Sequence record: MZ475898.1
Reading direction: 5' to 3' (one strand)
DNA: 64,000 bases
This document shows, in pieces, positions 1,438-59,786 of the stretch (the stretch's first letter is position 1; every line of letters starts with the position of its first letter). Both the position numbers and the translations under genes were made by a program. Under the pieces are notes generated by a model. That model did not search any database, was not told where the DNA came from, and saw only the letters and a list, made by a program, of their open reading frames with translations.

Positions 1438-1455
1438 GTTTCAAATCCCCTAAGA

Positions 1456-8539: not shown

Positions 8540-8571
8540 TGTGTTCTCCGTGTAACCATAAGCGGTGATTA

Positions 8572-8577
8572 AAATTA
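8572..8577 (-). promoter_or_regulatory. TAATTT promoter-like motif
   Basis: gtaTAATTTT ~33 nt upstream of 8539; overlaps the upstream stop codon. Confidence 0.5.
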
Positions 8578-12996: not shown

Positions 12997-13187
12997 GGGC
13001 GAGTAAGCTCCGAGATAGGTTTGGCTAAGAGTTCTGTAATGCGTGCCGGGCACTCAGGGTTGCGCTTTAAGTTCTTGTGCAACCACTGCAAGTTACCGCC
13101 TGACGCAGATACTTCGCTACGGAACGCAGGAAGTTTCAGTACAGCGCCGTGCTTGTTCAGCAACGCATTCAGTTCTTTCAGTAACAT
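12993..13187 (-). CDS. Hypothetical protein (64 aa)
   Basis: Fills the gap, has an RBS and is translationally coupled to the J-domain gene. Confidence 0.7.
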   Translation of the reverse strand: MLLKELNALLNKHGAVLKLPAFRSEVSASGGNLQWLHKNLKRNPECPARITELLAKPISELTRP

Positions 13188-13196
13188 CGTTTATCC

Positions 13197-13829
13197 TTAA
13201 AGAGATGAGGTCATTAAATCGAGAAGGTTTGAGACTACATGAGCAGGTCCGATTGAGATACCCGCTTGCACAGGCAGATGAACACGACGAGTAAACAACT
13301 CCATCGGGTCAGGACCACCGCCAGTCACTACGATACGAGGTATCTTTGGAAACATCTCAAGGATATCACGCAGTCTTTCAATCTTATAGCTGGTGCTGTC
13401 TATCGTCACGTTCGATATGATCAGCATTGACGGTCGCTTGCTTTTGAGTTGTTCATAGTCGAAGCGATCACCATACAGCGTAACCCAACGCGGCTTCAAG
13501 GCTGTTGTCTCTGAATCTTCAACAGCCGCATGGAAGATAGATAACGCTGCCATCTTCGCACGGTAGTCTGACGGGAAGCTACTGATAACCGTGATGCGTG
13601 GGTCAAGGCCAAACGGACTTTCAATCATCTTTGCAAGATGCGTCATCTGCTTGGTCTTTGAAAAAATCTTGCCTTTAAAGTAAGGCGACATTGGCTTAAA
13701 GTCTTGCGAGGCTTCGACCACATCGAATGTCTCACGTTTGCCGAAAAGAAGCTGAGGGTCAACTCCCAGCGTCTGCATCTGCTTTGCTACTGCGGGTTCA
13801 AAGTCAAAAGTTAACACAATACCCTCCAT
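13197..13829 (-). CDS. Hypothetical protein, possibly a degenerate P-loop/helicase-loader-like fold
   Basis: Start moved to MEGIVL (downstream of the CTGTAAATA motif); alpha/beta pattern with SMLIISNV strand; fold call is weak. Confidence 0.55.
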   Translation of the reverse strand: MEGIVLTFDFEPAVAKQMQTLGVDPQLLFGKRETFDVVEASQDFKPMSPYFKGKIFSKTKQMTHLAKMIESPFGLDPRITVISSFPSDYRAKMAALSIFHAAVEDSETTALKPRWVTLYGDRFDYEQLKSKRPSMLIISNVTIDSTSYKIERLRDILEMFPKIPRIVVTGGGPDPMELFTRRVHLPVQAGISIGPAHVVSNLLDLMTSSL

Positions 13830-24452: not shown

Positions 24453-27400
24453 TTACACTGACTTGTCTTTCGACGCAGTGAGTTTCAGTTTGGTCAACGC
24501 AGCCAGACACTGTTTCATGTTCGGGATGCTGTAGCCAGCTTTCTGAATACGGTTGATACGCGCTTTCGCACCAGCAACGTTCTTCACGAAGCTAATCCAC
24601 ATACCAGACGACAGGCTGAACGTACCGAACTTACGAGTGTTCGGGATTTTCGTTCCCACGAAGCGTTTCACTTTCGGGTTAGTCGCTAGGTCGAACATGA
24701 TGCGCAGACGATCTTCCATAACCATCGGATATGCTTTGATGTGCTTAACATCTTTCGCAGAGGTGTGACGAATCTGGAAGAACTGTTTCAACTGCGACTG
24801 TGCCTTAACAGCCAGCTGGTAGTTGAAGCTCAGCTTAGGCGTAGACTCATCGAAGAAGTCCTGAACGAACTCCAGACGGCGAGAGGATGGACCGTCAAAG
24901 TCCAGCTTCTTAGCCTCGATGAAGTCCAAGAACTTCTCAAAGTCAGAGTAGTACGCGCAATCGATATACACGTAATCCCCGAACTCGGTGAACTCGAAGT
25001 CCTTGAGCGCTTTCGCATCTGGGTCGGTCGCATCTGCGTACAGAGCAACGAAGCCGTTGTACACGGTAGGCGTCAGTTCCAGAGACATATCGGTACCGTC
25101 GTCCAGTGTAACAGCAGCACCACGAACAGCCTTGCGCACTTTGTTGTCCAGCGGAGGAAGCTCAGCAGCCTTACGACGACGAACACGGGCAGCTGCCTGC
25201 TCTACGCCTTCGTTGATTGGCTTACCTTCTTCTTTGTTCGCTTTACGTTGAGTAACGCGGGCGTTCTTACGCTCTTGAGCCTCAACTTTCTTCTCGGTTG
25301 CTTTCGAGTCGGCAGTTTGAGTCTCATCGGTCACGGTGTCTTCGACTTCAACGCGCTTGGCTTCTGCTTCAACACGCTTACGGTCTTTAGCTGTCGCCCA
25401 CGGCTTACGCACTTCAAAGAAGCGTTTCAGATCAGCAGGAGATACCTTACCAGCGTAATGCACTTTGTTCGCAGGCACAGTAACGATTTCCTCGCCACCA
25501 GCAAGACGAACACGCACGGTACTGATAGGGCTGTCAGCACGCAGCTTACCGTCAGCAGTACGAACCGTAACGCTCACGATGATACCGTTACCGAACTCAG
25601 TCACAACAGGTGCACGGTTCAGCGCGTCCTTCACGTTCTCGCCACTTGAGAAGTTCTGGTTGCGTGCCCAATCAAGCAGACGCTCCAGTCCCCAGTTATG
25701 ACGGTCTGGGATCTTCTGGTTAGCAACGATAGGTACCTGCTCCATGATACGGAAGTCACGCAGAGCCGGAGTAGCAGGCAGCGGCTGCATTGCTGCAATC
25801 GTTGTCTTACGCATCTCTTGGAACTCTTGCGCTTCAATATCGTTCAGGTCACGCTTGGCCAGGAAGTACGGTTTAAAGTCTTCCATCGTGTTGTTATCGA
25901 TCAACAGACTTGCATTCATCTTGATTGGAGCAAGCTGATACTGGTCGAGTTTTTCGTAGCGCTGGTTACCTTTCTCGTCGAAACGAGTTTTCTCCAGCGT
26001 CTTCCACATCAGACGTGCAACCTTACCTACTTCAAGAGTCTTGTTCGTCATCACCCAATCGATGAACACGGCTTCGCGTTTCATATCGCCGGGCTTACCG
26101 TTCTCATCAAGCACGGCAGCAGCAACGTCAGGACGGAAGATACGCGCAGTAGACTGATCGTATGTACCTGGAGACCACGGGGTGTCGCAGCGAATGATAC
26201 GACTACCCATCTGCATGTTGTGGCCTTCACTGATTGCCTGTTCGTTAGCAATCAGAATCTGCACACGGTCATCGGTCTTGAACGCGTCAAGGTTGGCCTC
26301 TTTGTTCTGGCCTAACTTACCGACTTCACCGTGATACACAACAGCGACCTTCTTATAGTTCTCAGGCAGAGAGTTATAGATTGCGTTTGCAGCACGCGTG
26401 TAGCGAGTGAACACAATCAGCTTGCCCTGAACCTCTGGCTTCCAGTAGTCCGGGTCTTCCGGAGGTGGAACCATTGAAGGAGGCAGTGTTTGGCGTTGGA
26501 ACTCTTCGGACTGTTTACGCGCCAGATACTTCTGACCCTGATAGACAGCCATGTCCAGTTCACGAGGAGTAACGCCCTGCGTCCAGTTAAAGATTTGCTG
26601 CTCTTTGACCATCGGGTCTCGTTCAGGCTGCACTTCAAAGTGCTTGCGAATACGCTCGATGATGGTCAGGACTTTCGCAGAAACGAACTTGGTGACGCCC
26701 GCGTTCTCAAACGTCAGACGAGCAACGTCATCACCCATCGGGTCGGTCAGCATCATCTCCATGCGCTGGAAGTACATGTTGAGGTCAGCGTTACCTGCGA
26801 GCAATGCGCCCAGGTCATCACCTTCTTCAATATCATCTTCATCAATGTCGTCAGAAGCAGTAGATTCTGCACCGTCCTCTTCGTCATCCTCACCCGCAGA
26901 TGCAGCACGGCGTTTGGCGTTGTTAGCAGCTTCCTGCAACTTCTCCAACACCTGAGCATACATCGCGTTATACACCTCTTGGTGCAGCGATGAGTTAGGC
27001 ACAGTCGGGTCATCAATCTCAACCTGAATGAAGGTATCGATTGGGTTCGGCAACATGAACGCCCAGTTCTTACGCTTGAACGAGATGAACGCCGTGTGGT
27101 TAGACATACGCGAGTGAGCACGACGAATCATTTCAATGTCGTCTTTCGCGCCGTCGTATGCAACGTCGAGAGAGTCACCGAACATCGCAGGCGTCATCAG
27201 TGCAGCCTGACCAACAATGTCACGCACGCGGTCAGTTACCAGAGTACCAGTAGCGATACGCGCATAGCGAACAGACGGTGCGGTGAATACTGCTTTGGTG
27301 TTGAAGTGCACCTGAGAGCCAGACTGGCCACCAGAGAAGTTCTTAACCTTGTGCGACTCATCCAACATAACGTAGCTGAAATTGAAGCGGTTAACGAACT

Positions 27401-33681: not shown

Positions 33682-33687
33682 AAATTA
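33682..33687 (-). promoter_or_regulatory. TAATTT promoter-like motif
   Basis: tacTAATTTC, intergenic. Confidence 0.6.
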
Positions 33688-33699
33688 GTATTTCGAGGG

Positions 33700-34864: not shown

Positions 34865-35971
34865 TCAACCTGCCTTAGTGAGTCCCAGGTACTCAATTAA
34901 ATTGCGTAGCTGGTCATTGAACCCACCGGATATAAGCGCTCTCGCCATATTCAAGTGATTCGAAGAAACTGCACGCACAACCTTAGCCTGATACTCTGGA
35001 ACGTTTTGCATGTTCTGAGTCAGGTTGTAGAAATAGCTGCGCACAAAGTTAGTTCGCTCCACATTGCTCGCTTCCATATCAGACGTATCTTGCGTCGGAG
35101 TAAGAAGCATATACAGGGCAGCAAGCAGTTCAGGAGTCGGGTCAACAATCTGCGATGCGATAGCGGCACTAAGTTTCATCATGCCTTTCGCAACGAAGTC
35201 CGCGACAGTTTTGTCGATATACTCGGTGCCAGACTTGCCTACGTTCGGAAGGTACAGTTTCGGCAGAATGTACATGCAGAAGTAAAGAGGGAAGTCTTTA
35301 CGCATAACGTCCGAGATAAGCATCTCTGAATAGTCTTTCCAGATGTTCACGTTGTAGTGCCATTCATCGTACGGCACAGTGCGCATCAGGTTAGACACAC
35401 TCAGGTCGAGCACCTGATTGGCTGTCGTAGCCAAGTCGATGTAGTTTGCAGCAGGCGAAAGGGACGCACTCGAAACCAATTGAACGTAGTTACGAGTCAC
35501 AGCACCAACAGTGTTATAAATAACATTGAGGAACTCAAGTCCGTTGCCGTTAAGCGCAAACAACACAGAGCGAGGTAGACCGACAGTCAGGTATTCGTTA
35601 TTGTCAGCTACACCCCATAAACGCCAATAGCGCCCACGACCAAGCTGCGTCAGAGGTTGAGGCAGCACGCGGTTGGGGCGCGGCTTGAGGCAAAACGTGA
35701 AGCAGATACCGCTGTCAATCATGATCACTGAATCATCGGGACGATTCGAGTAACCCATCGACATTTGATTGTCGGTACTGAATACGTTAACCAGAGTGAA
35801 GTTCAGAGCTTTGGTGAAAGGCATCTGAGCTTCAATTATCTGGGAGATGACTTGACGCAAGATAGTGTCAAGCACATAAGGAGAAGCACTTCGCATTTGT
35901 TGCGGTCGATACTGACCACCGAAAGTGCTTTCCTTGAATGTGCGATCTACCTTGTAGTGGGTCATTGCCAT
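34865..35971 (-). CDS. Hypothetical (probable virion) protein, 368 aa
   Basis: ORF coupled to the upstream gene in a TAATTT-led operon. Confidence 0.7.
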   Translation of the reverse strand: MAMTHYKVDRTFKESTFGGQYRPQQMRSASPYVLDTILRQVISQIIEAQMPFTKALNFTLVNVFSTDNQMSMGYSNRPDDSVIMIDSGICFTFCLKPRPNRVLPQPLTQLGRGRYWRLWGVADNNEYLTVGLPRSVLFALNGNGLEFLNVIYNTVGAVTRNYVQLVSSASLSPAANYIDLATTANQVLDLSVSNLMRTVPYDEWHYNVNIWKDYSEMLISDVMRKDFPLYFCMYILPKLYLPNVGKSGTEYIDKTVADFVAKGMMKLSAAIASQIVDPTPELLAALYMLLTPTQDTSDMEASNVERTNFVRSYFYNLTQNMQNVPEYQAKVVRAVSSNHLNMARALISGGFNDQLRNLIEYLGLTKAG

Positions 35972-37260
35972 TACTTGACCGACTGTTTAAGCAGACGCTT
36001 CTGTTGAGGACTCAGACCCATAACGTCGGAGATTTGATCAATCTTCGCCAGAGTCAGAACGCCTTTAGCAGTGCCGCTAGAACCAGTCAGGCTGATCTTA
36101 ACGAACTCACGTCCTTCACGACCTGTGACCAGCTGGTGGATAAGAGTGTTCTTACCGCTACGTCCCGCACGCAATGCGCTGCTTGCCATGCCCAAAATCT
36201 CGGTAACAGCTTCGCGCTTCTCAGAAGGAGACAGGCCAGGAACGAGACGCACATAAAGGCTATCGTTCTGCACACGCACGGAGTCGAAGATTTCTTTCTT
36301 GCGACCACGAACTGTATGCTGGCGTTGACCCAACTGAGTCATGTTACGCAGGTCATCAGTCGAACGATTGATAGGCTTACGTTCGCTGTAGTTCAGGAAT
36401 CCATCCAGAGCCATCAGCTGGTTGATAGCACGCTTCATTTCAGGAGCGGTTTCAATCAGACGGCCCAGCGGGAATGAGTTAGGAACTTTCTCATCCACCA
36501 GCGAGGTGATGTAGTTTTCACTCAGACCAGTAGCCACTGCAATCTTGGTAGAGACTACGATAGCATATGTCGGATAGTGCAGGCCATCAGAGTTCACGAA
36601 GTTATCGATGAACACATAGGTCTGGAAGATGATTGGGTCAGTACCCTGCGCGATGAAAGTACGTGTACGAATCTTAGAGTAATCTTCTTTACTCAGAATC
36701 TTCGACAGGTAGTTAGCGATGGTAGCAGCCAACTTGGTGTGTTCTTTCGGTGCGCCGTTCTTAACGTCAATGCTCATCAAACGCACCAGCTGGGTTTGCT
36801 GGTCTTTGGCCTGATTGATAACACTAAGCAGTGACTTGGAAGCGCCTGTCTGATCTTTGAAGGCGCTGAACGTTTTGCTATTCAGAATCTGATAAGCAAC
36901 GGACAACTCGCCGATAGCCTGAGACAACTGACTGACCTGAGCGTTATATTTAGCTTTGTTCTGGACGTCAGAAATATCAATCTTCGACAAGTCGATCACT
37001 TGGTTCAGATCGATTGACTTGGCCTGTTTACCTTTGATTGAGCCTTCCAGATCAGAAAGTTCAATCGCTTTAGGGCTGGCGCTAACAGACAGCAGCTTCT
37101 TAGGAATGGTTACAGAAGTAGCAAGAGAGATAACGTTTTCAAGTACCTTCTTGAACTCTTTAGCAGTACGTGCATTACGCAACGCCACCATGTTCCCAGA
37201 GCCGTAATCAACGGATGCGCTGATGCTGCTAACTTCATTGTTTTTGGCAGTCTTAGCCAT
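35971..37260 (-). CDS. Hypothetical (probable virion) protein with SISAS/SVSAS sites (start corrected to MAKTAK)
   Basis: GAGGA RBS before ATG 37260; TAATTT motif upstream. Confidence 0.7.
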   Translation of the reverse strand: MAKTAKNNEVSSISASVDYGSGNMVALRNARTAKEFKKVLENVISLATSVTIPKKLLSVSASPKAIELSDLEGSIKGKQAKSIDLNQVIDLSKIDISDVQNKAKYNAQVSQLSQAIGELSVAYQILNSKTFSAFKDQTGASKSLLSVINQAKDQQTQLVRLMSIDVKNGAPKEHTKLAATIANYLSKILSKEDYSKIRTRTFIAQGTDPIIFQTYVFIDNFVNSDGLHYPTYAIVVSTKIAVATGLSENYITSLVDEKVPNSFPLGRLIETAPEMKRAINQLMALDGFLNYSERKPINRSTDDLRNMTQLGQRQHTVRGRKKEIFDSVRVQNDSLYVRLVPGLSPSEKREAVTEILGMASSALRAGRSGKNTLIHQLVTGREGREFVKISLTGSSGTAKGVLTLAKIDQISDVMGLSPQQKRLLKQSVK

Positions 37261-37298: not shown

Positions 37299-37304
37299 AA
37301 ATTA
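37299..37304 (-). promoter_or_regulatory. TAATTT promoter-like motif
   Basis: cgcTAATTTT, intergenic. Confidence 0.6.
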
Positions 37305-37373
37305 GCGACAAGGAGCTGTTTATTTCTGATCTTAGCGCAGGAAGACTTTACAAATTTTTTGACTGAGAATGAC

Positions 37374-38159: not shown

Positions 38160-38165
38160 AAATTA
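38160..38165 (-). promoter_or_regulatory. TAATTT promoter-like motif
   Basis: tacTAATTTT, intergenic. Confidence 0.6.
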
Positions 38166-38208
38166 GTATAATCCCCGTAGGAATAAACAGGAAATTTCCT
38201 AAACATTT

Positions 38209-39288
38209 TTACTGTACTGTATATCCGATTTCAGACAACACCGCGTCCAATTCTTTCCGTGCTCGCACACGCAAAGACTTTTTAATTCCCGATGCCTTAA
38301 GGTAATCCTTTAGGCCATCACGTGGGTCGATATCCGCAAGCGCCAACTCACTAACATCAACTGTATCTATATTATCGAGATCGACACGTTTATTCGTGGA
38401 ATTTATTTGGGAAATGTTAGGCACGCGTGTGCGTATATCTGCTGGGATAGAGACTTCTTCTTTCACTATAACTCGATAACGAATAGCAGAGTTGGCTTCG
38501 AGACGCGACCAATCCTTTTGAGTTTCAATCAATACTGTTTCCAGTCTAAAGCCAGGCTTGCTGTCAACAAACTTCTGCTTGACCACCAGCTCTTTGTTCT
38601 TGTACTGCGCCTTGAAGTGAATGAAACCTTTAGGCAGAGACTCGCCGAATGTCTTTTGATACGGTGCACCACAGTACGTGAAACGTTTCTTCTCCAGCAC
38701 TTGATGCAAATGGATGTGACCACTGATCGTGTAATCGCGTGGGTCAACCTTAATGTCGTGCTTCGCTTTGAGAGGACGACCGTTATCGCCCAGAGCACCA
38801 ACAGCTTCAACGTGACAGAAGTTAAGACACGGCTTCTTGTGCTTGATGCTTTCCTTTGCAGGGTGCGGTAGGAAGTTAACAACGATGCCGTCAATCTCAA
38901 CCTGTTCTGGTCTGAGATAGATGTGCAGCGACTTGAGGAACGACCACTCACAGAATGTTTTAATCAGGTCCATGCTGGTGGTTGTCATGTCCGCCCAGTC
39001 ATGATTGCCGCCACAGTAATGACTTTCAATGATACCGTCATACTTAAGGAAGTGCTGCATCAGTCTGCGCTTAGTCTCATCGTCCATGCGGAACTTATCA
39101 GTAATGTCGCCTGGGATAAAGATGTGCTTGATGCCGTGCTCAAGGGCATACTGGTAGATGCGATCAATTGTTTCGAGTTGACGGTCAACGTGATCTTGTG
39201 GGAAGTGATTCGATAAACCTTCCAAGTGCCAGTCAGCGGTTGCAAGTGCTTCAAGGAACGCAGTGGCGATCTTACTCTTTTTCATCAT
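38209..39288 (-). CDS. sbcD: SbcD/Mre11-like metallophosphoesterase nuclease
   Basis: ADWHL, GDITD, GNHD, FCH, SGHIH motifs. Confidence 0.9.
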   Translation of the reverse strand: MMKKSKIATAFLEALATADWHLEGLSNHFPQDHVDRQLETIDRIYQYALEHGIKHIFIPGDITDKFRMDDETKRRLMQHFLKYDGIIESHYCGGNHDWADMTTTSMDLIKTFCEWSFLKSLHIYLRPEQVEIDGIVVNFLPHPAKESIKHKKPCLNFCHVEAVGALGDNGRPLKAKHDIKVDPRDYTISGHIHLHQVLEKKRFTYCGAPYQKTFGESLPKGFIHFKAQYKNKELVVKQKFVDSKPGFRLETVLIETQKDWSRLEANSAIRYRVIVKEEVSIPADIRTRVPNISQINSTNKRVDLDNIDTVDVSELALADIDPRDGLKDYLKASGIKKSLRVRARKELDAVLSEIGYTVQ

Positions 39289-39382: not shown

Positions 39383-39410
39383 AGAAAACGCCCCGTTAGG
39401 AGCGTTTTCT
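39383..39410 (-). terminator. Terminator-like inverted repeat
   Basis: AGAAAACGC...GCGTTTTCT at the stop of 39409-40179. Confidence 0.75.
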
Positions 39411-40179
39411 ATAGATCAGTATAGGAGCGAGTGAAATACGACTGTACCATAGGCCGAGTACCTGCAATCAAGTTTTGACCGAAGAATATATCGTCAGCAC
39501 TGAATCGAAACAGTCGATTGTTAAACACGCATTCATACTTGAAGGGATTTCGTGGCGTATCGTTTTCTGTCGTGTCCAAATACAGAATCATGTCGGAATC
39601 ATCATAGCTGGTGTAGCTGTATGATGAGGCATTGATAGTCATAGACTCACAGCGAATGTAGCGGAAGGTGGGCGGGTTATCCACGAAGTTATAGGTGTCT
39701 AGTTCGACCTTACCTACTCGCGCAACACGAAAACTATTATTGGCATCCGTTACCATCAATGCGCTAATAGTCAGAGAAGGCGACTGGGCTCCTGTACGAA
39801 CATGCGTGCGCCCGTAAAACATCCGACTGCGTAACGTTGTATCGTTAGAAAAGAAAATTGTATTGCACGGAGTCCATGCAAGCGCAGTCACCTCTTGACC
39901 TAGAGAACAACCTCCAGCCAGAGTAGTGCCAGTGTGAATGTTGCTTGCGTTAGGCATAGCAGTGTATGCCCACTTCAGGTTTGATGCATAGCGCTTGGCA
40001 GCAGCCACGCCACTAACAGTATTAGCCTGACCATTTATGCCAAGCGTGAACAACGATTTGTTTACGACGTCTAACGGCGAAGCCACGTTGTCAAGCAGTG
40101 AGGTCTGATCGTCAAACGCAAACACTTGAGGACACAGCTTGTCGAATACTCCGTAATTGGTTAGATGGTATTGCATCAT
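39409..40179 (-). CDS. Hypothetical protein (256 aa), possibly a distant paralog of 40692-41516
   Basis: Similar size and beta-rich, T/S/N/G-rich composition. Confidence 0.7.
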   Translation of the reverse strand: MMQYHLTNYGVFDKLCPQVFAFDDQTSLLDNVASPLDVVNKSLFTLGINGQANTVSGVAAAKRYASNLKWAYTAMPNASNIHTGTTLAGGCSLGQEVTALAWTPCNTIFFSNDTTLRSRMFYGRTHVRTGAQSPSLTISALMVTDANNSFRVARVGKVELDTYNFVDNPPTFRYIRCESMTINASSYSYTSYDDSDMILYLDTTENDTPRNPFKYECVFNNRLFRFSADDIFFGQNLIAGTRPMVQSYFTRSYTDL

Positions 40180-41616: not shown

Positions 41617-41982
41617 TTACGCGATGACTGTGATTTCGTGGTCTTTAGACGACCACACTTTCTCACGGATGTTACGAGGCATAACGATGCAACCGTTAGA
41701 CGCTGTGCCTGGTGCTTTGATGCTATCGCCATGCATCTGGAAAGACGCACGACCAAACATCTCATTGTCCTTGTGCGGCACTAAGTCCATGATGTACGGA
41801 CCAGTCTTCTGACTAGTGCGCGGAGCACTGCATGTATAGACACCCTGAGGCAGTGGGCCTTCGTTCTTGACTGACTGCGACTGAGGGTCATTCTTGTGAG
41901 CACCCAGACCAGCATAGCCACGAGCCACCAACTGGTGGTTGGCATCAAACAGTTCACCTGTACTTTGTTTATAAGTCCACAT
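41617..41982 (-). CDS. Tlde1/DUF2778-type L,D-transpeptidase-like cell-wall enzyme (start corrected to MWTYKQSTG)
   Basis: GY.G....KN.P......GP.P.G.Y, FQMHGD....PGTASNGCI catalytic H...C motif. Confidence 0.82.
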   Translation of the reverse strand: MWTYKQSTGELFDANHQLVARGYAGLGAHKNDPQSQSVKNEGPLPQGVYTCSAPRTSQKTGPYIMDLVPHKDNEMFGRASFQMHGDSIKAPGTASNGCIVMPRNIREKVWSSKDHEITVIA

Positions 41983-42028: not shown

Positions 42029-43108
42029 TTATTTACGAGTTTTCTTCGCTGCACCGTACTCTGGGTTCTTGTTGGAGATATTGTACTGACGACCACCAGC
42101 TTCCTGGATCATGTCAGGCAGTTCATCCAATCCAGTTTTCTCGGCGTGCGCACCTGTGAACTGGTAAGTCTTACCATCTTTGGCCATGATCTCAATTGAA
42201 CCATTCTTACCGATAGAATAATTCATGTGCTTGAGGTCAGACTTACGGAAGCCAGGGATTTCCTTCTTGGCGTTGGCCAGCATAGTTTTTTCTTCCGCCG
42301 CCCACTGCTTACGCATTTGTGCCAAACGCTTCGCACCGCCTGGTTTCATTTTCTTCATTGCACCAGGACGAACTTGTTTCTGTGCAGGCTTGCCCAGAAG
42401 TTTTTCTGCACGGTCCGCTTTGATTGCACGCTTCTTCTCTGGGGTATAAGCACCGCCACCCACCAGACCTTTACGCTTCTTCCTTAACATCGGTGCAGTG
42501 GCTGCATCTACTTCATCCATGGAAAGAACGCGGCCTTTAGCTGGCGCTTTCTTAGCTGCTTTGGTGATGGTCTTGCTGCCCAGAGCATCGAACTTCGCAG
42601 AAGCCAGGAACTTAGGCTTGAACTGACCACGCTTGCCGGTAACGCCGAACTCGTTCAGCTTGGCAGTGCGCAGCGCAGCTAACACCTTAGGTGCTTTCTC
42701 TGTGATACCCTGAAGAGAAGTTGAGGTCAGACCCATCTTCAAGCCAGACAGTCCGTGCTTACGTGCATAAGACGCAGACTCTTTCAGATGCAACTTGGCT
42801 TCTTTCAGTGCAGCGCTGCCCTTAGCTTTATAGTCAGCGGCTTTGGCACTAGCGCGAGACTTTGCATCACCCGTCAGCGTTTTGACTTTAGCGCGGGCCT
42901 TGCTCCACGCATCGATGTTACGCGCAGCGCTAACGCCAGCAGTCTTAGCTTTCTTCAAATGACCAAGGATGGTCGTCAGTTCTGATTTCTTCTCTGAGTT
43001 AATAACCAGAGTAGCAACGCCATTCACCTTGGCGATTTTGTAGCTAGGCTTTTTAGCAGCAGACTCTGACACAACGTGGTCTGCGAGATTGATTTTAATG
43101 AGTGACAT
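42029..43108 (-). CDS. Lys/Ala-rich putative internal head protein (MSLIKINL...SESA family)
   Basis: Tandem paralog of 43119-44120 over the first ~120 aa. Confidence 0.72.
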   Translation of the reverse strand: MSLIKINLADHVVSESAAKKPSYKIAKVNGVATLVINSEKKSELTTILGHLKKAKTAGVSAARNIDAWSKARAKVKTLTGDAKSRASAKAADYKAKGSAALKEAKLHLKESASYARKHGLSGLKMGLTSTSLQGITEKAPKVLAALRTAKLNEFGVTGKRGQFKPKFLASAKFDALGSKTITKAAKKAPAKGRVLSMDEVDAATAPMLRKKRKGLVGGGAYTPEKKRAIKADRAEKLLGKPAQKQVRPGAMKKMKPGGAKRLAQMRKQWAAEEKTMLANAKKEIPGFRKSDLKHMNYSIGKNGSIEIMAKDGKTYQFTGAHAEKTGLDELPDMIQEAGGRQYNISNKNPEYGAAKKTRK

Positions 43109-43118
43109 AGAGGTGACC

Positions 43119-44120
43119 TTATGCGTTGTATTGAGTCAATGGCCGCGGCTTACGCTTAGGCAAACGTTTTGTTTTTATACCAGCAGCTTTATCTGAGGCG
43201 CGCTTATCTTCGCGTGCAGAGATGCCTACTGTTTGTGACAGGTAGCTGGTCAATGAAGCCTTAGACAGGGTTTCTTTGCGCTTGCCTGAGTCAACAACAT
43301 AGGAATTGCCGGAAGCGTGTGTGATCTTGAGCTTGAGCTTACCATTGTCATAATGGATGTTGCCGTCAGCATCACCGTACAGTTTGGCAGACGCAGCTTT
43401 TTCCTGATACTTCTCCAGCTTGTCGATAACGCTACGCAGAGCGCTACTGCTTTTGTAGATATTGTTCAGGTGCTTCTTGCCTTCGTCCACTTTAGGCGCG
43501 GCAGCTTTCTTCGTCACAGGCTTTGTAACTAAACGCTTGGTAGTTTTCACAGCAGGTGCTTTACCCGAAGCTGCGATCTTCTCACCAATCTTATCGAACT
43601 TATCACCAGTAGCATATCGAGGCTTCAAAGGTACTGTGCGATGTGCACCGTCTTTTGCACGGAAGCTATCAGGCTTCGCTTTACTGATCTTGCCTAACGT
43701 ATAGGTCGGGTCAGTTTGTGTGATATAGGACGCTTTGATGGACAGGTCGAGCGCACTCAAGCCAGCTTTCTTCAAAAGGTCAGCAGCAGCTTTAGCAAGT
43801 GCTTTGGCCTCTGTTACACCGTGCTTGATAGAGGCTTTGTTATCGCTAATCTTTTCACGAATAGGCGCTTTCTTTGCAGGGGTCTGCGCCTGACTCAGCT
43901 TGAGTTTCAATTTCTCAGTAGCAACACCAAGCTTTGCCGCAGACACACCGAGAGTTTTGGCCTTCTTGAGATTAGCAACGGCCTTCGTAACAGCAGACTT
44001 GTGTTTGCTGTCAATTACGAGGGCCTGTGCACCGCCGATAGGAACGAGATGATAAGCTGGCTTAGCTTTGGCCGATTCAGATACTGCAAACTCCGCCAAA
44101 TTGATTTTGATAAGTGACAT
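43119..44120 (-). CDS. Lys/Ala-rich putative internal head protein (MSLIKINL...SESA family)
   Basis: MSLIKINLA...SESA...P.Y......LVI.S..KS...LKKAKT.GVSAA shared. Confidence 0.72.
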   Translation of the reverse strand: MSLIKINLAEFAVSESAKAKPAYHLVPIGGAQALVIDSKHKSAVTKAVANLKKAKTLGVSAAKLGVATEKLKLKLSQAQTPAKKAPIREKISDNKASIKHGVTEAKALAKAAADLLKKAGLSALDLSIKASYITQTDPTYTLGKISKAKPDSFRAKDGAHRTVPLKPRYATGDKFDKIGEKIAASGKAPAVKTTKRLVTKPVTKKAAAPKVDEGKKHLNNIYKSSSALRSVIDKLEKYQEKAASAKLYGDADGNIHYDNGKLKLKITHASGNSYVVDSGKRKETLSKASLTSYLSQTVGISAREDKRASDKAAGIKTKRLPKRKPRPLTQYNA

Positions 44121-44129
44121 AGCTGTTCC

Positions 44130-44726
44130 TTAGACTCTGCCGGTCATAGTAAATTCTTTGCCCGCAGAGTAATCTCCTAAGGCCGCATAAAGAGAATCAC
44201 GCAACATCTTCTGAATGATATCCGAGTTATACGCGGACGCATCGCGGAAAGCGACTTCAACAGTTTCAGTGCGTGGGTTAATCACAGCATAACGCAGAGG
44301 TGCAATCTCCTGAGCGTCACACCACAGATCGACAACGTGCTGTAGTCCAGGCGTCATCTGAATTTTGAAATCAGACAGCAGGAACACAGCACTTTGAATC
44401 GGAGGCGGAGCAGACTGAGAGACAACAGCATTGTCCCCAAGTTTCTCCATAGCCATAGATGCATTGTACACTGAGGAGAATTTCGTTTTCAGTGCAGAGG
44501 TCTGTACTACCTTATAGCTATTCGATGAAATGCCCTGACGACGCAGCTTGGCGATACGCACAACGTAGTCACCAGAATCGTCTGAGGCAAATGCAACGTA
44601 AGCGTAGCTCACGAAGCCAGGCTCCTCACTAAGCAGCTTGTGGTCGAGGGCACGAACACCCAAGACAGCACTAAGTGCCTGTAAGCCCATCTGAACTTCG
44701 CGGGACAGAGACACGTACATTTCCAT
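44130..44726 (-). CDS. Hypothetical protein with MEMYVSLS N-terminal tag
   Basis: 198-aa ORF. Confidence 0.7.
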   Translation of the reverse strand: MEMYVSLSREVQMGLQALSAVLGVRALDHKLLSEEPGFVSYAYVAFASDDSGDYVVRIAKLRRQGISSNSYKVVQTSALKTKFSSVYNASMAMEKLGDNAVVSQSAPPPIQSAVFLLSDFKIQMTPGLQHVVDLWCDAQEIAPLRYAVINPRTETVEVAFRDASAYNSDIIQKMLRDSLYAALGDYSAGKEFTMTGRV

Positions 44727-49517: not shown

Positions 49518-49548
49518 AAAAAGAAGGGCCACCATCTAGGCAGCCCTT
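49518..49548 (-). terminator. Rho-independent terminator
   Basis: AAGGGCTGCC-TAGAT-GGTGGCCCTT-CTTTTT. Confidence 0.8.
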
Positions 49549-49555
49549 GCATGTC

Positions 49556-50002
49556 TTAATATCTACGAGGCTTCTTAGGCTTCTTGATCGTAGACTTAGG
49601 ACGCTTGATAGCCCGCAGTGCTTTGCGTGCTTCCACAATTTGTTTGGCTACAGTGGAACGACGAGCTTTGACCTGGTCTGTATCTTGGTCAGTGCCTTTC
49701 AGCTTATCGAGTCTGTTCCATTCTTGCACCAGACGATCAACAACACCAGCACGACCGACGCGTTGCTGGTTGATGCGCACAATGTCCTGATGGGTCTTCA
49801 CGGAGTTTTGTGCGTCTTTCTGTTTAGCACGCGCAGATGCAACGTGGTCAGAGTTACCCTCAGCAGACTTCTCGTTAAGCTGCTTACGTCTAAGTGCCAG
49901 ACGGCGTTGCGCTTGCTTGAGTTCGTCTTTGGAGTTCTCCAGTTGCGTCTGCATGTCTTCAAGAGGACTTGAGCGTGCGCTCAGACTAACGAGAAGTTCC
50001 AT
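49556..50002 (-). CDS. Basic coiled-coil protein with MELLVSLSA tag (start corrected)
   Basis: GAGGAACCT-ATG; R/K-rich coiled coil. Confidence 0.75.
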   Translation of the reverse strand: MELLVSLSARSSPLEDMQTQLENSKDELKQAQRRLALRRKQLNEKSAEGNSDHVASARAKQKDAQNSVKTHQDIVRINQQRVGRAGVVDRLVQEWNRLDKLKGTDQDTDQVKARRSTVAKQIVEARKALRAIKRPKSTIKKPKKPRRY

Positions 50003-50009
50003 AGGTTCC

Positions 50010-50561
50010 TCACACAGGCTGTATGGTAATGATCTGGACGCCTTGTTCATTACGCGACTTGAGAATGCGGAAGCGGAAGTCTATTGGATAAATCCATTCG
50101 AGTTCATCCATAAGACCATCAAGAATCATCTCACGTTCTTCTTCGTCACCACCGAACTCTTTATCAAGATCAGCAGCCATGATCAGATTGTACGTGCGCT
50201 GCCAATAGTTGAAGGCTTTGTTCTTTGGCCCAGGAAGAATCTCCAGCATCGTATCTGTCTTACCTGCCTTTGCAAAACCTTTAGCAGTAGCGAAGTCTTG
50301 ACTGAACGACAGGTACTTGTTGATCATCACGAAAGGATTCTTAGCCTGCTTAAACAGAGCCATGAGTTCTTTTTCGTACAGACCACGATACAGAGGCATC
50401 TCAGGACGTTCGGGATATTTAGCGATCAGATCATCAAGTGCAGGGCTGGAGCGATTAGCGTCAATCACATGCCCTTTATCGTGGAGCATCGTCCACATAA
50501 TGTCTTGCTGTCTGTCGGTGTAGGCAGGTATCTTAGCACTGAGGCTAACCATGAGTTCCAT
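50010..50561 (-). CDS. ADP-ribosyltransferase (R-S-E clade, Alt/Mod/VIP2-like) with MELMVSLSA tag
   Basis: LYRGL, YLSFS, ELEW..P...F.I catalytic motifs in the correct order and spacing. Confidence 0.8.
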   Translation of the reverse strand: MELMVSLSAKIPAYTDRQQDIMWTMLHDKGHVIDANRSSPALDDLIAKYPERPEMPLYRGLYEKELMALFKQAKNPFVMINKYLSFSQDFATAKGFAKAGKTDTMLEILPGPKNKAFNYWQRTYNLIMAADLDKEFGGDEEEREMILDGLMDELEWIYPIDFRFRILKSRNEQGVQIITIQPV

Positions 50562-50572
50562 ACAGGTTCCTT

Positions 50573-50600
50573 AAAAGAAAAGGCGGACCGAAGCCCGCCT
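50573..50600 (-). terminator. Rho-independent terminator
   Basis: AGGCGGGC-TTCG-GTCCGCCT-TTTCTTTT. Confidence 0.88.
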
Positions 50601-50689
50601 CTGAGTAATGTGCGCTATGCACTCGACGGTTAAGTCTCCTGCTATTGTTTTACCTCGTTGCAGTAAACGAGGAGATAAGGATCACCTCC

Positions 50690-51226
50690 TCAGACGGTAC
50701 CTAATACTTCAAGCACATCTTCGTCGTCCACACTTGCAGACCACGAACGCATAACAGAAGCATTGCCGCGATTGCCTGTCAGCATTGATTTAACTGCTGG
50801 TGTGGCTTCGATTTCGGCATAGTGTTCCAAGAGAGCTTTGTCATCTTTGAACCACATAATGGAGTTACCGTCCTTAGGGACGATCAAGAATTGGGTAGGC
50901 TTCTGGGTGACGTTCAACGTCAGGTAGTAATCACCAGCACCTTTAGGAGTCAGCATCGGCATTGGCTTCATCGCATACATGAAGTCCTTAGCGTGCATGA
51001 GTTTCTGATCGCCGAGCAACCAGATTGCGCCTTCTTCGCCTTGACGCACAGCAGACAAATCGCCTTTACGTGTTGCAATCGTTCCGAATACATCTTTATC
51101 GAAACGTGACAGACCGAAGATCAGCGATGCGAGACGCTTCAGGTCTGGGGTCGTGCATGGACTGTTGATTACAGCCATACCCTCAGACCCAAGTGTGAAT
51201 TTAGAGAGTGAAATAAAGAGTTCCAT
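50690..51226 (-). CDS. Hypothetical protein with MELFISLS tag (start corrected)
   Basis: ATG 51226 gives the same tag as the two downstream genes. Confidence 0.7.
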   Translation of the reverse strand: MELFISLSKFTLGSEGMAVINSPCTTPDLKRLASLIFGLSRFDKDVFGTIATRKGDLSAVRQGEEGAIWLLGDQKLMHAKDFMYAMKPMPMLTPKGAGDYYLTLNVTQKPTQFLIVPKDGNSIMWFKDDKALLEHYAEIEATPAVKSMLTGNRGNASVMRSWSASVDDEDVLEVLGTV

Positions 51227-51260: not shown

Positions 51261-51266
51261 AAATTA
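51261..51266 (-). promoter_or_regulatory. TAATTT promoter-like motif
   Basis: cacTAATTTT upstream of the tagged-gene trio. Confidence 0.6.
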
Positions 51267-51291
51267 GTGTTCCTTAAGACATTTCTGAAAT

Positions 51292-51320
51292 AAAAAAGGG
51301 CGACCCTTAGGCCACCCTTT
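51292..51320 (-). terminator. Rho-independent terminator
   Basis: AAAGGGTGGCC-TAAG-GGTCGCCCTTTTTT. Confidence 0.85.
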
Positions 51321-51336
51321 TGTTAGTTATTTACCA

Positions 51337-52614
51337 CTACTTCTTCTTTTTCTTCTTCTTGGGCTTTTCGTCTTCGTCGTCATCTTCGACTTCGTTACCC
51401 AATTTCACAGACAGCTTGCCTTCATAAATGTCGGCCATCAGACTGAGGATAGTTGATTCCAACATAATGTCAGCAGGCACGGAGGTACTGTTGAATGCTA
51501 CCTCTGCTTCTGCCAGTGCTTTCTGCAAATAGATCAGGCAAACAAGATTGACCTTAATCTTCTCTTGCTTAACCATATTCAGGAACATCTTGAGGCCAGC
51601 AGACTGCCACTTGTTTGTGTCAGAGTAATGACCAAGTGCACCGTGAAGTACCCAGCGTGCTTTCGCTACGATTGCTCGTGGGTTGTTTGCTTCACGCAGG
51701 AACTGAATGACACCGATAAGGTCCATCGCAATGAACGCACCGATAGTCTGAACTGCTTTGCCTTCCATTTCGATTTCTGGATCGGCTGCCGCAAGTTCTG
51801 CCACCAGCTTCTTATCAAACGCTTCACCACCTTTAACTGACGCAAAGATGTTTTGCATCATCGTGATTGCACCGCGCATCTGACCGCCTGAATACTCGGC
51901 AACCTGATGCAACGCTGATTCAGCTTTATCACGCGCTTTATCTTTCTTAGGCATGATGCCCAGAGTATCAGCAATCTCGGACAAACGCTTCGCAATGATG
52001 TCGGTAGGAATCGGCCTGATAGGAAGTTGTGTCATACGACTGATCATCGTATCTTTCATCTTCTCAGGGTTCGTGGTCACAAAGATGAACACAACATGCG
52101 CTGGTGGTTCTTCAATGATCTTGAGGAACTTCGATTCGGCTGCGCTCGACATAAGGTGCGCTTCATCGAGAATGAACACACGGCGCTTGAACGTAGCCGC
52201 CAGTGGTGCTGAGTCAACGATACGCTGCGAGCCTTCAACTTTACCCGAGTCGCTACCCATATCGAACTCTTGCACGTCAGGGTGCTGGCCGTTATTGTAC
52301 ACCATGCGACACGAGGCACACTTACCACACGCGCTAAACGAATCACAGTTGATGTACTTTGCGACGAGACGCGCAAACGTTGTTTTACCACTACCCAGAT
52401 GGCCTGTGATGATCATCGTTGATGGAACCGTTTTCGACTTCTGCCAACCGTTCATGATCTTAACGATGTGGTCTTGACCTACATAGTCTTCGATGCGCTT
52501 CGGTCGAAACCGAGCGGCAAAGTTTACCGTAGTCAGTTCAGTAGAAGATTCGGACTTGGAACTATCTGAACCAAAGTCGCGTTTCTTCTTCTTTTTCTTT
52601 TCTTCTTTCGCCAT
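51337..52614 (-). CDS. dnaX: Clamp loader AAA+ subunit (DnaX gamma/tau-like)
   Basis: RFRP....D.VGQ, GHLGSGKTT, C..C..C..C zinc site, FILDEAH, TI.SR-like MISRM. Confidence 0.93.
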   Translation of the reverse strand: MAKEEKKKKKKRDFGSDSSKSESSTELTTVNFAARFRPKRIEDYVGQDHIVKIMNGWQKSKTVPSTMIITGHLGSGKTTFARLVAKYINCDSFSACGKCASCRMVYNNGQHPDVQEFDMGSDSGKVEGSQRIVDSAPLAATFKRRVFILDEAHLMSSAAESKFLKIIEEPPAHVVFIFVTTNPEKMKDTMISRMTQLPIRPIPTDIIAKRLSEIADTLGIMPKKDKARDKAESALHQVAEYSGGQMRGAITMMQNIFASVKGGEAFDKKLVAELAAADPEIEMEGKAVQTIGAFIAMDLIGVIQFLREANNPRAIVAKARWVLHGALGHYSDTNKWQSAGLKMFLNMVKQEKIKVNLVCLIYLQKALAEAEVAFNSTSVPADIMLESTILSLMADIYEGKLSVKLGNEVEDDDEDEKPKKKKKKK

Positions 52615-53417: not shown

Positions 53418-53423
53418 AAATTA
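53418..53423 (-). promoter_or_regulatory. TAATTT promoter-like motif driving the candidate ncRNA
   Basis: cacTAATTTT, same 10-mer as at 51261. Confidence 0.55.
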
Positions 53424-53451
53424 GTGACATTCCCTTTTATTCAGAAAATTC

Positions 53452-54364: not shown

Positions 54365-54955
54365 CTATGCCCTCAGGTCAACCAATATAGATCCGCTTAG
54401 GTCACGCAGCATCTCTCGACCAAGAGGCGTGTACATGATTTGATGTACGGCAATACGTTCGAGGAACTGCTTGCTGGAATGTACATCGTGTCCTGTACGC
54501 TTTCGAACAAACTCTATGATCGAGGGAGCAGGTTGAATGAGGAACGTCAGTATCTCCGCATCGTGGAGAACACTACCCATGTCAGTGATTGGCTTTAGCT
54601 CAGTCTCCTGATCAAGGATATATCGGATAACGCGTTCCTCGTTACCAGTTTTAGGATTATGCTTAAAGAAGGTGCGAGCAGATTCAACCATAAGTTTGAA
54701 ATCATACTCGTCATCCGCAGTAGGCATTCTGAGAAAGAGAGCAGCAAGCAACAAATTTATTTCCACCTGTGGACCACGTTCAATGTTGAGCATCGCGTGT
54801 GCGGTGAGCACTACATCAAGCGCATAGTCACGGGTATACAGAGGATGAGAGGCTACTGTTCTGTCAAAATAGTCAAGGGCTGTGCGAAGTCCGTGACGAG
54901 ATAACAGGTGCTCTGCCTTAACACGAGCTAGGCGTTGCACCCTAGTCTTCTCCAC
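54365..54955 (-). CDS. HD-domain-like protein with degenerate active site
   Basis: LLLAALFLR where AAL.HD is expected; LHDAEI where CDADL is expected. Confidence 0.5.
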   Translation of the reverse strand: MEKTRVQRLARVKAEHLLSRHGLRTALDYFDRTVASHPLYTRDYALDVVLTAHAMLNIERGPQVEINLLLAALFLRMPTADDEYDFKLMVESARTFFKHNPKTGNEERVIRYILDQETELKPITDMGSVLHDAEILTFLIQPAPSIIEFVRKRTGHDVHSSKQFLERIAVHQIMYTPLGREMLRDLSGSILVDLRA

Positions 54956-55916
54956 CGATCTCTTTGAGGCTGTTCTTGATTGCTTTGCGCAGCGTCTTGC
55001 CTACGTCAATGCCATCAACATGTTTTGCGAACACATGCGCAAACAGCGTCGTCGGATTTTTCATGATTGCTTTATCGAGGTCCGGACGACCCTCAGCGAT
55101 TTGCATTTCACCAGGCCACAGTTCAGCAACGGCGGAGCTATCGTTAGCGGCGATAAGCTCAAGCTCGCGGACTGAGATAGAGTTCTGGCGTGCAATCGTT
55201 CGGAAGATGAGATCAACGAACGGCAGGAGATCTTCTGACACAACGTTCTTGACGTCTTTGGCATCGCCAGCACGTTGGAAGTCTTCCATGAGATCTGTCA
55301 GGACTTTCTTGTCGATCTTATGCACGTTGCGCAGTTTGTTGAACAACACCATCCAGCGAACTTTACGCTTGGAACTAATCAGGTGCGTCCACACACTTTC
55401 GCCGAGAGCAATCAGCAAACGATTATACACGTCAACTGAAACTGACTCGCGGCTAACGAACACGGTCAGCTCATCATGCCACTCGTCTTTCTTAAACTTA
55501 GAACGGAACGAGTGTGTCTTGGAGCCTGACTGCTGGACGAAGTTGATGCGCTTGCAGCGGCGCAGTGCTTCATGCAGCTTGTACTTCTCGATCACTTTCG
55601 GGAGTCGCTTCACTCCCTTACGACACGCTTTGGCGCAATCGGTTTCACGACCGTAGAGCGCGAGAGAAGGAAGGCCAGACATTACAGCGAGACTCGCGTA
55701 AGGTCGGACGGTAACTCCACAAACAGACATGCCGGGTTCCGGGTCTTTGCCCAGTACGGCAAGAACATCGCCTGCTTTAGGACTGAACTTAATTGACTCT
55801 GGGTCAGGAGTACCGAGTGTTGCAGCCAGAAGGCCAACGGTCTTGCCTGTCGCCAGAACCAAATGATTTTTGTTGCCCTGTCTCACGACAAGGTAATCTT
55901 GCTCACTATGTTTCAT
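54942..55916 (-). CDS. Hypothetical protein, possible inactive zincin-like fold
   Basis: LLIALGESVW and NPTTLFAHVF resemble HELGH and N..E.FAE.F without the metal ligands. Confidence 0.6.
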   Translation of the reverse strand: MKHSEQDYLVVRQGNKNHLVLATGKTVGLLAATLGTPDPESIKFSPKAGDVLAVLGKDPEPGMSVCGVTVRPYASLAVMSGLPSLALYGRETDCAKACRKGVKRLPKVIEKYKLHEALRRCKRINFVQQSGSKTHSFRSKFKKDEWHDELTVFVSRESVSVDVYNRLLIALGESVWTHLISSKRKVRWMVLFNKLRNVHKIDKKVLTDLMEDFQRAGDAKDVKNVVSEDLLPFVDLIFRTIARQNSISVRELELIAANDSSAVAELWPGEMQIAEGRPDLDKAIMKNPTTLFAHVFAKHVDGIDVGKTLRKAIKNSLKEIGGED

Positions 55917-59126: not shown

Positions 59127-59786
59127 TTACTTTTTGCGAGAGATCTGCTGGTTCAGCTTCTTTCCGATTTGAGTAAGAACACGTTCTACCGTTTCACCGT
59201 CACGCTCTCCGATGGCCATAGCAAGGCGTTCGCCCTGTTCACGCGATAGCTCAGGCATAATCAGCTTGAGCATCTTTGATCGCGCCTTTGCAGACTTTGA
59301 TTTGCCTTTTGACAGCGATTGCGTTTCCATTTCGGCAGCAACACGGCTCATTGTGCGTTGCACGCGACGATCTGCGAATATATCACCGAAGATATTGCCA
59401 AACAGGTCCTGGAACGAGCGTCCGCCACCAAATATCTCATCCTTAGTGAAGCGCACTTCCTTTCCTAGCGCATTACGCTTAACGCTGTGCGTGCTTTCCA
59501 CTTCGTTTTGGACGCGTGCACCTTCTATGAAGTTCTCATCAGGCCGCGATTTCTTACCTTCAGCACCGGGCTTAGTGACGCCGTTACGCAGCTCAGCACG
59601 CCCCTCAACGGCCGCATCAGGGTCAAACATGTCATCAGTGTTGACGCTCTGATTAGGGTCAAAGGGGATCTTGTCTGTCAGCTTGTTTTCATCTGGCCAC
59701 GAACGAGGGATATCAGACGCCGGTTGAGGGCTATTCGTCATATCACCGTTCTTTTCGCTGTTCAGACTCACATAAATCTTGGTCAT
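59127..59786 (-). CDS. Hypothetical protein with MTKIYVSLNS N-terminus
   Basis: 219-aa ORF with AGGAG RBS. Confidence 0.72.
   Translation of the reverse strand: MTKIYVSLNSEKNGDMTNSPQPASDIPRSWPDENKLTDKIPFDPNQSVNTDDMFDPDAAVEGRAELRNGVTKPGAEGKKSRPDENFIEGARVQNEVESTHSVKRNALGKEVRFTKDEIFGGGRSFQDLFGNIFGDIFADRRVQRTMSRVAAEMETQSLSKGKSKSAKARSKMLKLIMPELSREQGERLAMAIGERDGETVERVLTQIGKKLNQQISRKK

Follow-up and report, generated by a model that had tools for sequence, protein, structure and literature searches.

Several otherwise unrelated proteins encoded in the 64,000-nucleotide window analysed here, which comprises record positions 124001-188000 of the Erwinia jumbo phage pEa_SNUABM_25 (MZ475898.1, 263 kb; window position 1 is record position 124001), open with a short peptide whose canonical form is M-E-L-x-[VI]-S-L-S. 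This N-terminal peptide, termed the tag, was found to be real and highly enriched at N-termini, conserved across genera and modular over unrelated protein families. In a family of giant Erwinia/Dickeya phages, at least 13 unrelated proteins bear it. With a probability of roughly 55%, it is considered to be a capsid-loading signal for injected proteins, which would resemble the capsid-targeting sequence (CTS) of phage T4.

The close relatives of pEa_SNUABM_25 are the Snuvirus phages; pEa_SNUABM_7 is 98.5% identical to it. Alexandra, Y3 and AD1 (about 78% DNA identity), and likewise Yoloswag and the Dickeya JA phages, are more distant, and the relationship to PaBG, Lu11 and phiRSL1 is seen in the proteins. 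The phages grouped with PaBG, Lu11 and Alexandra have been named the 'Lupandier group' (PMC7412058). The comparison covered the rest of the pEa_SNUABM_25 genome and syntenic stretches of Alexandra, AD1, Yoloswag, JA11 and PaBG, a set of 340 genes from a codon-usage-based caller (GenBank also counts 340), and the virion proteome of PaBG with its 14 identified proteins (PMC7412058). No paper mentioning the motif was found, literature searches for Lu11, Yoloswag and Snuvirus gave no relevant data, and the AD1 paper contains no proteomics.

A conserved N-terminal peptide on unrelated proteins

The preliminary description of this DNA had pointed to three consecutive genes opening with M-E-L-x-[VI]-S-L-S, which start at 51226 (MELFISLSK), 50561 (MELMVSLSAK) and 50002 (MELLVSLSAR), and to similar starts at 44726 (MEMYVSLSR) and 59786 (MTKIYVSLNS); all five are present, on the minus strand. 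Elsewhere in the genome the starts MMLNVSLSAK, MTIVYISLSQ, MEMLVSLSHE and MKIFVSLSAP were found, and there are tagged genes at a distance of 80 kb, on the opposite strand. The tagged genes of the window and the hairpins around the consecutive trio are as follows (aa, amino acids; pLDDT, predicted local distance difference test, the confidence score of AlphaFold models).

51203-51226, minus strand: tag MELFISLS, codons 1-8 of the 178-aa gene, (nearly) invariant in 17 homologues; residues 1-7 have pLDDT below 50
50690-51226, minus strand: tagged 178-aa protein, phrog_31786, with a predicted folded core at residues 10-150
50538-50561, minus strand: tag MELMVSLS, codons 1-8 of the ADP-ribosyltransferase gene; M1, S6, L7, S8 and A9 invariant in 8 homologues down to 66% identity
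50010-50561, minus strand: tagged 183-aa putative ADP-ribosyltransferase of the R-S-E type, Alt-like by PHROG (phrog_832, 'RNA polymerase ADP-ribosylase', E=2.6e-13)
49979-50002, minus strand: tag MELLVSLS, codons 1-8 of the 148-aa gene; tag present in five orthologues, four of which also keep a downstream S-P-L-E
49556-50002, minus strand: tagged 148-aa protein, phrog_28362, charged and with a Lys/Arg/Pro-rich C-terminus; translationally coupled to the ADP-ribosyltransferase gene
44130-44726, minus strand: 198-aa protein with the tag start MEMYVSLSR and a second motif, V-S-Q-S-A, at residue 102; tag kept by orthologues in four other phages
59127-59786, minus strand: protein of 219 aa, phrog_31583, whose tag is the variant MTKIYVSLNS; its orthologues link the VSLS and IKINL forms
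51294-51321, minus strand: intrinsic-terminator-like hairpin; it ends the clamp-loader unit, from which it insulates the first gene with a tag
50579-50602, minus strand: terminator-like hairpin separating the 178-aa gene from the ADP-ribosyltransferase gene
49524-49548, minus strand: terminator-like hairpin after the 148-aa gene

The three hairpins flank the two transcription units of the trio in a moron-like layout. Longer upstream readings are possible for two of the five tagged open reading frames (from 51238 and 50050). The tag starts are preferred because they are those annotated in RefSeq for pEa_SNUABM_7, because the 178-aa protein has 17 database homologues, which all begin at the tag, and because the start at 50002, located 7 nt past the stop codon of the ADP-ribosyltransferase gene, is preceded by a GAGGAA Shine-Dalgarno sequence.

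A scan of the N-termini of the whole proteome counted the genes in which a pattern starts within the first 16 residues and compared this number with the expectation from its internal frequency. The pattern [IV]SL[SN] was found in 9 of the 340 genes against 0.49 expected (p=3e-9), and h-S-x-S-A, where h is a hydrophobic residue, in 10 against 0.99 (p=1e-7); the same test revealed no N-terminal excess of the control patterns h-T-x-T, h-G-x-G and h-x-E. The consensus reads M1, E/K/Q2, I/L/V3, a hydrophobic residue at position 4, V/I5, S6, L7, S8 and A/K9, with S6, L7 and S8 each found in 32 of 35 aligned tags. Proline occurs within residues 10-15 of half of the tagged proteins (18/36) as compared with 84 of 328 others.

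In 28 tags from five phages, Ser6 is encoded by AGY 16 times and by TCN 12 times, Ser8 by AGY 13 times and by TCN 14 times, and Leu7 by six different leucine codons, while the only common element in the DNA upstream of the tags is the Shine-Dalgarno sequence. The use of both serine codon classes at both positions demonstrates selection at the level of the peptide rather than of the DNA, and the tag is thus a selected peptide signal rather than a nucleic-acid signal. It is disordered in both AlphaFold models (the 178-aa protein and the ADP-ribosyltransferase) and lies outside the folded domain in these predictions, the folded domains starting by about residue 10-40.

The bearers had also been described as otherwise unrelated, and this held in an all-against-all BLASTP comparison of 36 tagged proteins from five phages, whose first 10 residues had been trimmed: 15 unconnected families of 78-717 aa were obtained. 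Orthologues from Alexandra, AD1, Yoloswag, JA11 and a metagenomic relative retain the tag while the residues behind it drift, and it persists at 55-65% overall divergence as well as on newly acquired genes. New tagged genes turn up at the same loci in relatives. At the locus between the 148-aa and 178-aa families, an Alt-like ADP-ribosyltransferase is encoded in pEa_SNUABM_25 and, in JA11, an identically tagged ART-PolyVal enzyme (PF18760, E=2e-27), and the metagenomic relative harbors an additional tagged gene of 277 aa there. The tagged set holds two families of ADP-ribosyltransferases and one NUDIX hydrolase; the domain of the latter additionally gave a match to the NUDIX part of a portal-protein PHROG.

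By predicted fold and catalytic motifs, the product of 50010-50561 is an R-S-E ADP-ribosyltransferase. Its model is of moderate confidence (pLDDT 62), and the top 50 Foldseek matches in PDB are all ADP-ribosyltransferases (E down to 2e-5; template modelling (TM) score 0.4-0.5). The arginine R59 in Y-R-G, the S-x-S at S85/S87 and the E-x-E at E153/E155 are invariant in nine sequences. Residues 1-10 have a mean pLDDT of 26 and no secondary structure. The model of the 178-aa protein is likewise of moderate confidence (pLDDT 68), and no significant match in PDB was obtained with Foldseek (best E=0.028, TM 0.2). All 18 homologues share its C-terminus (50690-50740), which consists of an invariant R-S-W-S-[AG] and, behind it, an acidic tail of some 15 residues that is disordered; it may constitute a second processing or interaction element. 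The orthologue of the 198-aa protein in Yoloswag is a 545-aa form that keeps the tag. Searches of Pfam, NCBIfam and PDB sequences were empty for the 178-aa, 148-aa, 198-aa and 219-aa proteins.

A paralogous family of about 250-295 aa is interleaved with the tagged genes. Its members mostly start with M-Q-Y, or with M-Q-F and M-Q-L in Yoloswag, and their copy number differs between phages; the M-Q-Y start may be a second, family-specific N-terminus. Members are located at 39409-40179 of the window (minus strand) and, in Alexandra (stretch L008), at 5216-6085, 6623-7489, 7905-8756 and 12440-13324. A small protein without the tag, encoded at 41617-41982 (minus strand), also lies among the tagged genes; judging from its position and the common N-terminus M-W-x-Y-K-Q-S-T-G, its orthologues in AD1, Yoloswag and JA11 are genes annotated DUF2778.

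Variant leaders, virion proteins and promoter-like motifs

The preliminary description had further noted S-x-S-A near the N-termini of three other groups of proteins, and in each of them it was found where described:

42029-44120, minus strand: two paralogous basic proteins of 359 and 333 aa, which start MSLIKINL and carry V-S-E-S-A at residues 13-17
24453-30287, minus strand: 1944-aa SNF2-type helicase protein (Pfam SNF2-rel_dom and Helicase_C) in the structural gene block, with the N-terminus MMNQIISTSA
35971-37260, minus strand: 429-aa protein behind the motif GCTAATTT, carrying S-S-I-S-A (residues 11-15) and L-S-V-S-A (residue 57)

Judged from the sequences, the MSLIKINL start is a variant of the same tag system. 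A start of the form M-[SA]-L-I-K-[IL]-N-L is found on families that are unrelated past residue 20, including gp83, gp219 and gp220 of PaBG. Moreover, the starts of the 59786 gene and its orthologues grade between the two forms, from IYVSLNS through MKVKISLNSE, MARIKISLSGE and MTVIKISLNSE to MKLKINLSES. The N-terminus of PaBG gp83 is MLIKINL, and gp83 has been identified as a virion protein by mass spectrometry (PMC7412058, Table 1).

A second link to the virion is provided by PaBG gp202, an orthologue of the 1944-aa protein that starts MGSLFTLNSLSAA and has N-S-L-S-A-A where pEa_SNUABM_25 has I-I-S-T-S-A. This 221-kDa helicase makes up band 1, the largest, of the PaBG virion proteome (PMC7412058). 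Since gp202 is in the virion, the product of 24453-30287 looks like a head-packaged, DarB-like protein rather than the replication helicase as which it is named in RefSeq; a methyltransferase domain was not found in it with Pfam.

Taken together, S-x-S-(A) ends several distinct leaders, namely MELxVSLS, MSLIKINL..VSES-A, MLIFLSES-A, MVLSES-A and IISTS-A, and KMPT-N domains (PF20294) directly follow M-L-I-F-L-S-E-S-A and M-V-L-S-E-S-A. A tag-like start, MKVRLSISA, was also seen on the NAD-dependent DNA ligase (record 115991-117961, or L004:17991-19961, minus strand; outside the window), whose N-terminus is MTEFKSISA in JA29. The ligase is probably not a cargo, given the replication-type CTGTAAA motif upstream of its gene and the absence of the extension in the Alexandravirus pEa16.

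Two promoter-like motifs were recognised. The first, [GA]CTAATTT, is a candidate late promoter, and its placement suggests late expression of tagged genes: of its 18 copies in the genome, 13 are found on the coding strand no more than 100 nt upstream of a gene start. The genes preceded by it include the tail sheath, the orthologue of the PaBG virion protein gp191, the tagged genes at 51226 and at record position 206125, and the NUDIX operon. The following copies lie in the window:

51261-51268, minus strand: ACTAATTT, late-promoter-like motif 42 nt upstream of the start at 51226
2634-2641, minus strand: copy of [GA]CTAATTT
33682-33689, minus strand: copy of [GA]CTAATTT
37299-37306, minus strand: copy of [GA]CTAATTT
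38160-38167, minus strand: copy of [GA]CTAATTT
53418-53425, minus strand: copy of [GA]CTAATTT

Two adjacent genes at 265-2442 (minus strand) are annotated 'tail sheath' in a RefSeq relative; a duplicated tail sheath is a hallmark of the Lupandier group (PMC7412058).

The second motif, [AT]CTGTAAA[TC]A, sits 30-50 nt upstream of about 40 genes genome-wide and is probably an early or middle promoter of this phage group. Most of the genes behind it are involved in replication or nucleotide metabolism or are small genes in the plus-strand arms; examples are the copies at 52659, before the clamp loader (51337-52614), and at 39323, before 38209-39288. In agreement with the preliminary description, the replication genes preceded by this motif, among them the clamp loader and an SbcD-like gene, have no canonical tag, and the genome-wide tag lists contain no replication enzyme with one.

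Proposed capsid loading and competing explanations

In the proposed mechanism, a portable peptide tag of the form M-[EKQ]-[ILV]-h-[VI]-S-L-S, or of the variant form M-x-L-I-K-I-N-L, would direct unrelated proteins into the assembling prohead late in infection; the loaded proteins would then exit with the DNA at the next infection. The residue after the tag is usually A or K, and a linker containing Pro often comes next. The alternation of hydrophobic and small polar residues is like that of an exposed beta-strand, and docking may occur by strand addition on a component of the core, the scaffold or the inner shell. The head maturation protease may subsequently cut the tag off, the scissile bond lying, more speculatively, after S-x-S or after a downstream Glu. 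Late expression, a location in the head and injection into the next host are what we infer for the tagged proteins. Capsid loading is favored because the tag is enriched, selected as a peptide, conserved, modular and disordered, and because of the type of cargo, the two PaBG virion anchors, the promoter motif and the presence of head machinery; it is favored also because the LIKINL form is itself modular, the orthologues of the 59786 gene grade between the forms and no replication enzyme was seen with the canonical tag.

The head machinery is encoded outside the window. A predicted head maturation protease (phrog_18299, E=1e-125; record 111898-112677), annotated in PaBG as 'prohead core protein protease', lies near the gene of the 366-aa, HK97-fold capsid protein; searches of Pfam, NCBIfam and PDB sequences were empty for this protease. 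A very acidic 696-aa protein (record 108599-110689, or L004:10599-12689, minus strand) adjoins the major capsid gene, located between a capsid-side structural gene and the protease-side genes. It is labelled 'ATPase' in PHROGs; from its position and composition, it is likely a scaffold or core protein. It is the top S-x-S outlier of the proteome (22 against 8.3 expected, p=5e-5) and contains T-L-V-S-L-S-R-S, L-V-R-S-L-S-A-A and four copies of F-D-S-E-S in repeated D-F-D-S-E-S units.

Another protease gene lies closer to the tagged genes. The 324-aa 'peptidase' encoded at 54942-55916 (minus strand; phrog_17197, annotated as a Zn-metalloprotease in PaBG) is kept near the clamp loader and close to tagged genes in every relative examined, including PaBG, and gave no match in Pfam, NCBIfam or PDB sequences. 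It was ruled out as the prohead protease, which is the protein encoded at record 111898-112677.

Several observations weigh against capsid loading. The canonical MEL-x-VSLS tag was not seen in the approximately 158 kb of PaBG that were read, and the mass-spectrometry anchor therefore consists of the variant form and one S-L-S-A; moreover, the PaBG virion proteins gp191, gp261 and gp263 lack such a tag. The likeness of the head maturation protease to T4 gp21 is not detectable (hhalign probability 0.2%; a local match only, G-K-P-T..E-H.N-K-D). The count of [GA]CTAATTT is at chance level, the motif being unusual in its placement only, and inspection of the upstream DNA revealed no promoter motif belonging to the ADP-ribosyltransferase unit itself. 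The PaBG orthologue of the 696-aa protein, gp82, is not enriched in S-x-S, and a Glu behind the tag is not universal, which makes any cleavage rule tentative.

The preliminary description had proposed an analogous address together with an S-x-S cleavage code. A modular N-terminal address fits all the tests, whereas the data point weakly to an S-x-S cleavage rule. The S-x-S-(A) endings of several leaders and the S-x-S excess of the 696-aa protein speak for such a rule; the lack of enrichment in gp82, the absence of S-x-S from gp83 and the poor conservation of the capsid site, which PaBG does not share, speak against it. PaBG virion proteins are proteolytically processed, and the capsid protein loses about 20% of its mass (PMC7412058). 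In the pEa_SNUABM_25 capsid protein, V-H-S-Q-S at residues 65-69, or 19% of the length, fits this loss; it was rejected as the cleavage site, being absent from the capsid proteins of PaBG and RSL1. The capsid sequence L-A-L-S-x-S-T-G-E at about residue 33 is conserved, but within a generally conserved stretch. In several families a downstream Glu would be an equally good candidate for the cut site as S-x-S: a Glu 10-16 residues into the protein, which would suit a T4-type protease, is conserved in two families (S-P-L-E; S-L-N-S-E) and absent from others, including the ADP-ribosyltransferase family.

The tag could instead dock to another shared partner outside the capsid, such as a chaperone or immunity factor that restrains toxic enzymes, a host protease adaptor (which would make it a degron) or a common host target. 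Modularity, disorder and conservation suit any interaction of a peptide with a partner equally well, several cargoes (the ADP-ribosyltransferases and the NUDIX protein) are potentially self-toxic, and a few tags begin M-K-h-h-h, which resembles one class of ClpX N-terminal signals. Such docking is nevertheless judged unlikely, as position 2 is mostly Glu or Gln and not basic, a variant tag is carried by a PaBG virion protein verified by mass spectrometry, the tagged 51226 gene and structural genes have a promoter-like motif in common, and no candidate partner gene co-varies with the tag in the DNA read. Somewhat less probable still is a mere pro-peptide without any targeting role, which the head protease or the 324-aa peptidase would cut to activate or time the enzymes in the manner of a zymogen. 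The termination of several distinct leaders in S-x-S-(A), the conservation of the 324-aa peptidase close to tagged genes and the processing of PaBG virion proteins (PMC7412058) would agree with this explanation. Against it, residues 2-5 of the tag are conserved far more than an S-x-S site requires, unrelated folds are unlikely to be inhibited by a disordered peptide of eight residues, and gp83 has the LIKINL start without S-x-S.

That the tag is functionless, whether left over from common ancestry or from duplication of a 5' cassette, or a nucleic-acid signal that happens to be translated (a translation initiation region or recombination anchor), is highly improbable. Tagged genes are indeed clustered, three of them adjacent, and their Shine-Dalgarno contexts are alike. 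Yet the synonymous sites are scrambled, a switch between AGY and TCN serine codons needs at least two substitutions, similarity ends at residue 10, the peptide persists on diverged and new genes, and tagged genes occur far away on the other strand. A beta-clamp-binding motif was also considered for the tag and dropped, since the key positions of that motif do not fit.

Capsid loading thus stays the preferred explanation, and a broader version of it is entertained only tentatively, being rather doubtful as a whole: the Lupandier-group jumbo phages might combine a portable eight-residue loading code, a head protease of a novel specificity (around S-x-S in place of Glu at P1) and an arsenal of 'unbundled polyvalent proteins' injected together with the DNA. 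ADP-ribosyltransferases, NUDIX proteins, KMPT-N proteins and the giant SNF2 helicase would belong to this arsenal, along with some ten proteins whose fold is unknown.

Relation to known packaging systems

To our knowledge, very few phages besides T4 have a defined short, transferable capsid-targeting peptide, and none has been described for the PaBG/Lu11/Alexandra group. Virion processing in this group has been mentioned only in passing (PMC7412058). If capsid loading is true, the injected proteins of a jumbo phage could be listed from N-terminal sequence alone, and the delivered proteins would likely be host take-over and anti-defence enzymes, most of them of unknown fold. The exchange of effectors between phages would then amount to a new gene with the same eight codons, and the tag would offer a compact handle for loading a reporter, an enzyme or foreign cargo into large capsids.

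The cargo-loading peptides of encapsulins are short and portable, with alternating small and hydrophobic residues, and dock enzymes inside an HK97-fold shell. In contrast to what is proposed for the tag, these peptides mostly sit at the C-terminus, are part of bacterial nanocompartments and undergo neither cleavage nor injection.

phiKZ, 201phi2-1 and SPN3US are likewise jumbo phages, which load many ejection proteins that are trimmed by the prohead protease and whose N-termini are conserved between diverged paralogues (PMC5694885). The propeptides of phiKZ and SPN3US are mostly longer than 100 residues and end in S/A/G-x-E, whereas the tag comprises eight residues on non-homologous proteins. 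With the polyvalent proteins, whose domains are predicted to be delivered along with the DNA (Iyer et al. 2017, PMC5512222), the tagged and S-x-S-led proteins share this predicted delivery and an overlapping repertoire (ART-PolyVal, an Alt-like ADP-ribosyltransferase, an SNF2 ATPase, KMPT-N (PF20294) and NUDIX neighbours). In polyvalent proteins 2-15 domains are fused, in contrast with the single-domain proteins of 78-717 aa found here, each with its own tag and in this sense 'unbundled'. T4 Alt is head-packaged and injected, and P1 DarB, a helicase/methylase, is a head component (PMC5512222). Like DarB, the 1944-aa protein would be a giant SNF2-type virion component, here through its orthologue gp202, with a short conserved N-terminal element; it differs in the methyltransferase domain not found with Pfam, in the absence of a DarA/Hdf-type system and in its N-terminal sequence. 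Piya and colleagues (2017) are said to have shown that the N-terminus of P1 DarB directs packaging.

The CTS of T4 is found on IPI-III, Alt and gp24 (Mullaney & Black 1996, summarised in PMC5694885). The tag differs from it in its unrelated sequence, in its length (8-9 against 10-20 residues) and in the phage lineage, and its role in packaging is a proposed one. It also has no conserved end with Glu at the P1 position, which is L/I-x-E in T4; the proteases of T4, phiKZ and SPN3US all cleave after Glu (PMC5694885), and the tag raises the question of protease specificity beyond this rule. In common with the CTS, it is a short N-terminal peptide outside the folded domain of unrelated proteins, one of which is an ADP-ribosyltransferase, in a phage that encodes an annotated head maturation protease and a scaffold-like acidic protein. 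In layout and logic, the tag is closest to the CTS of T4.

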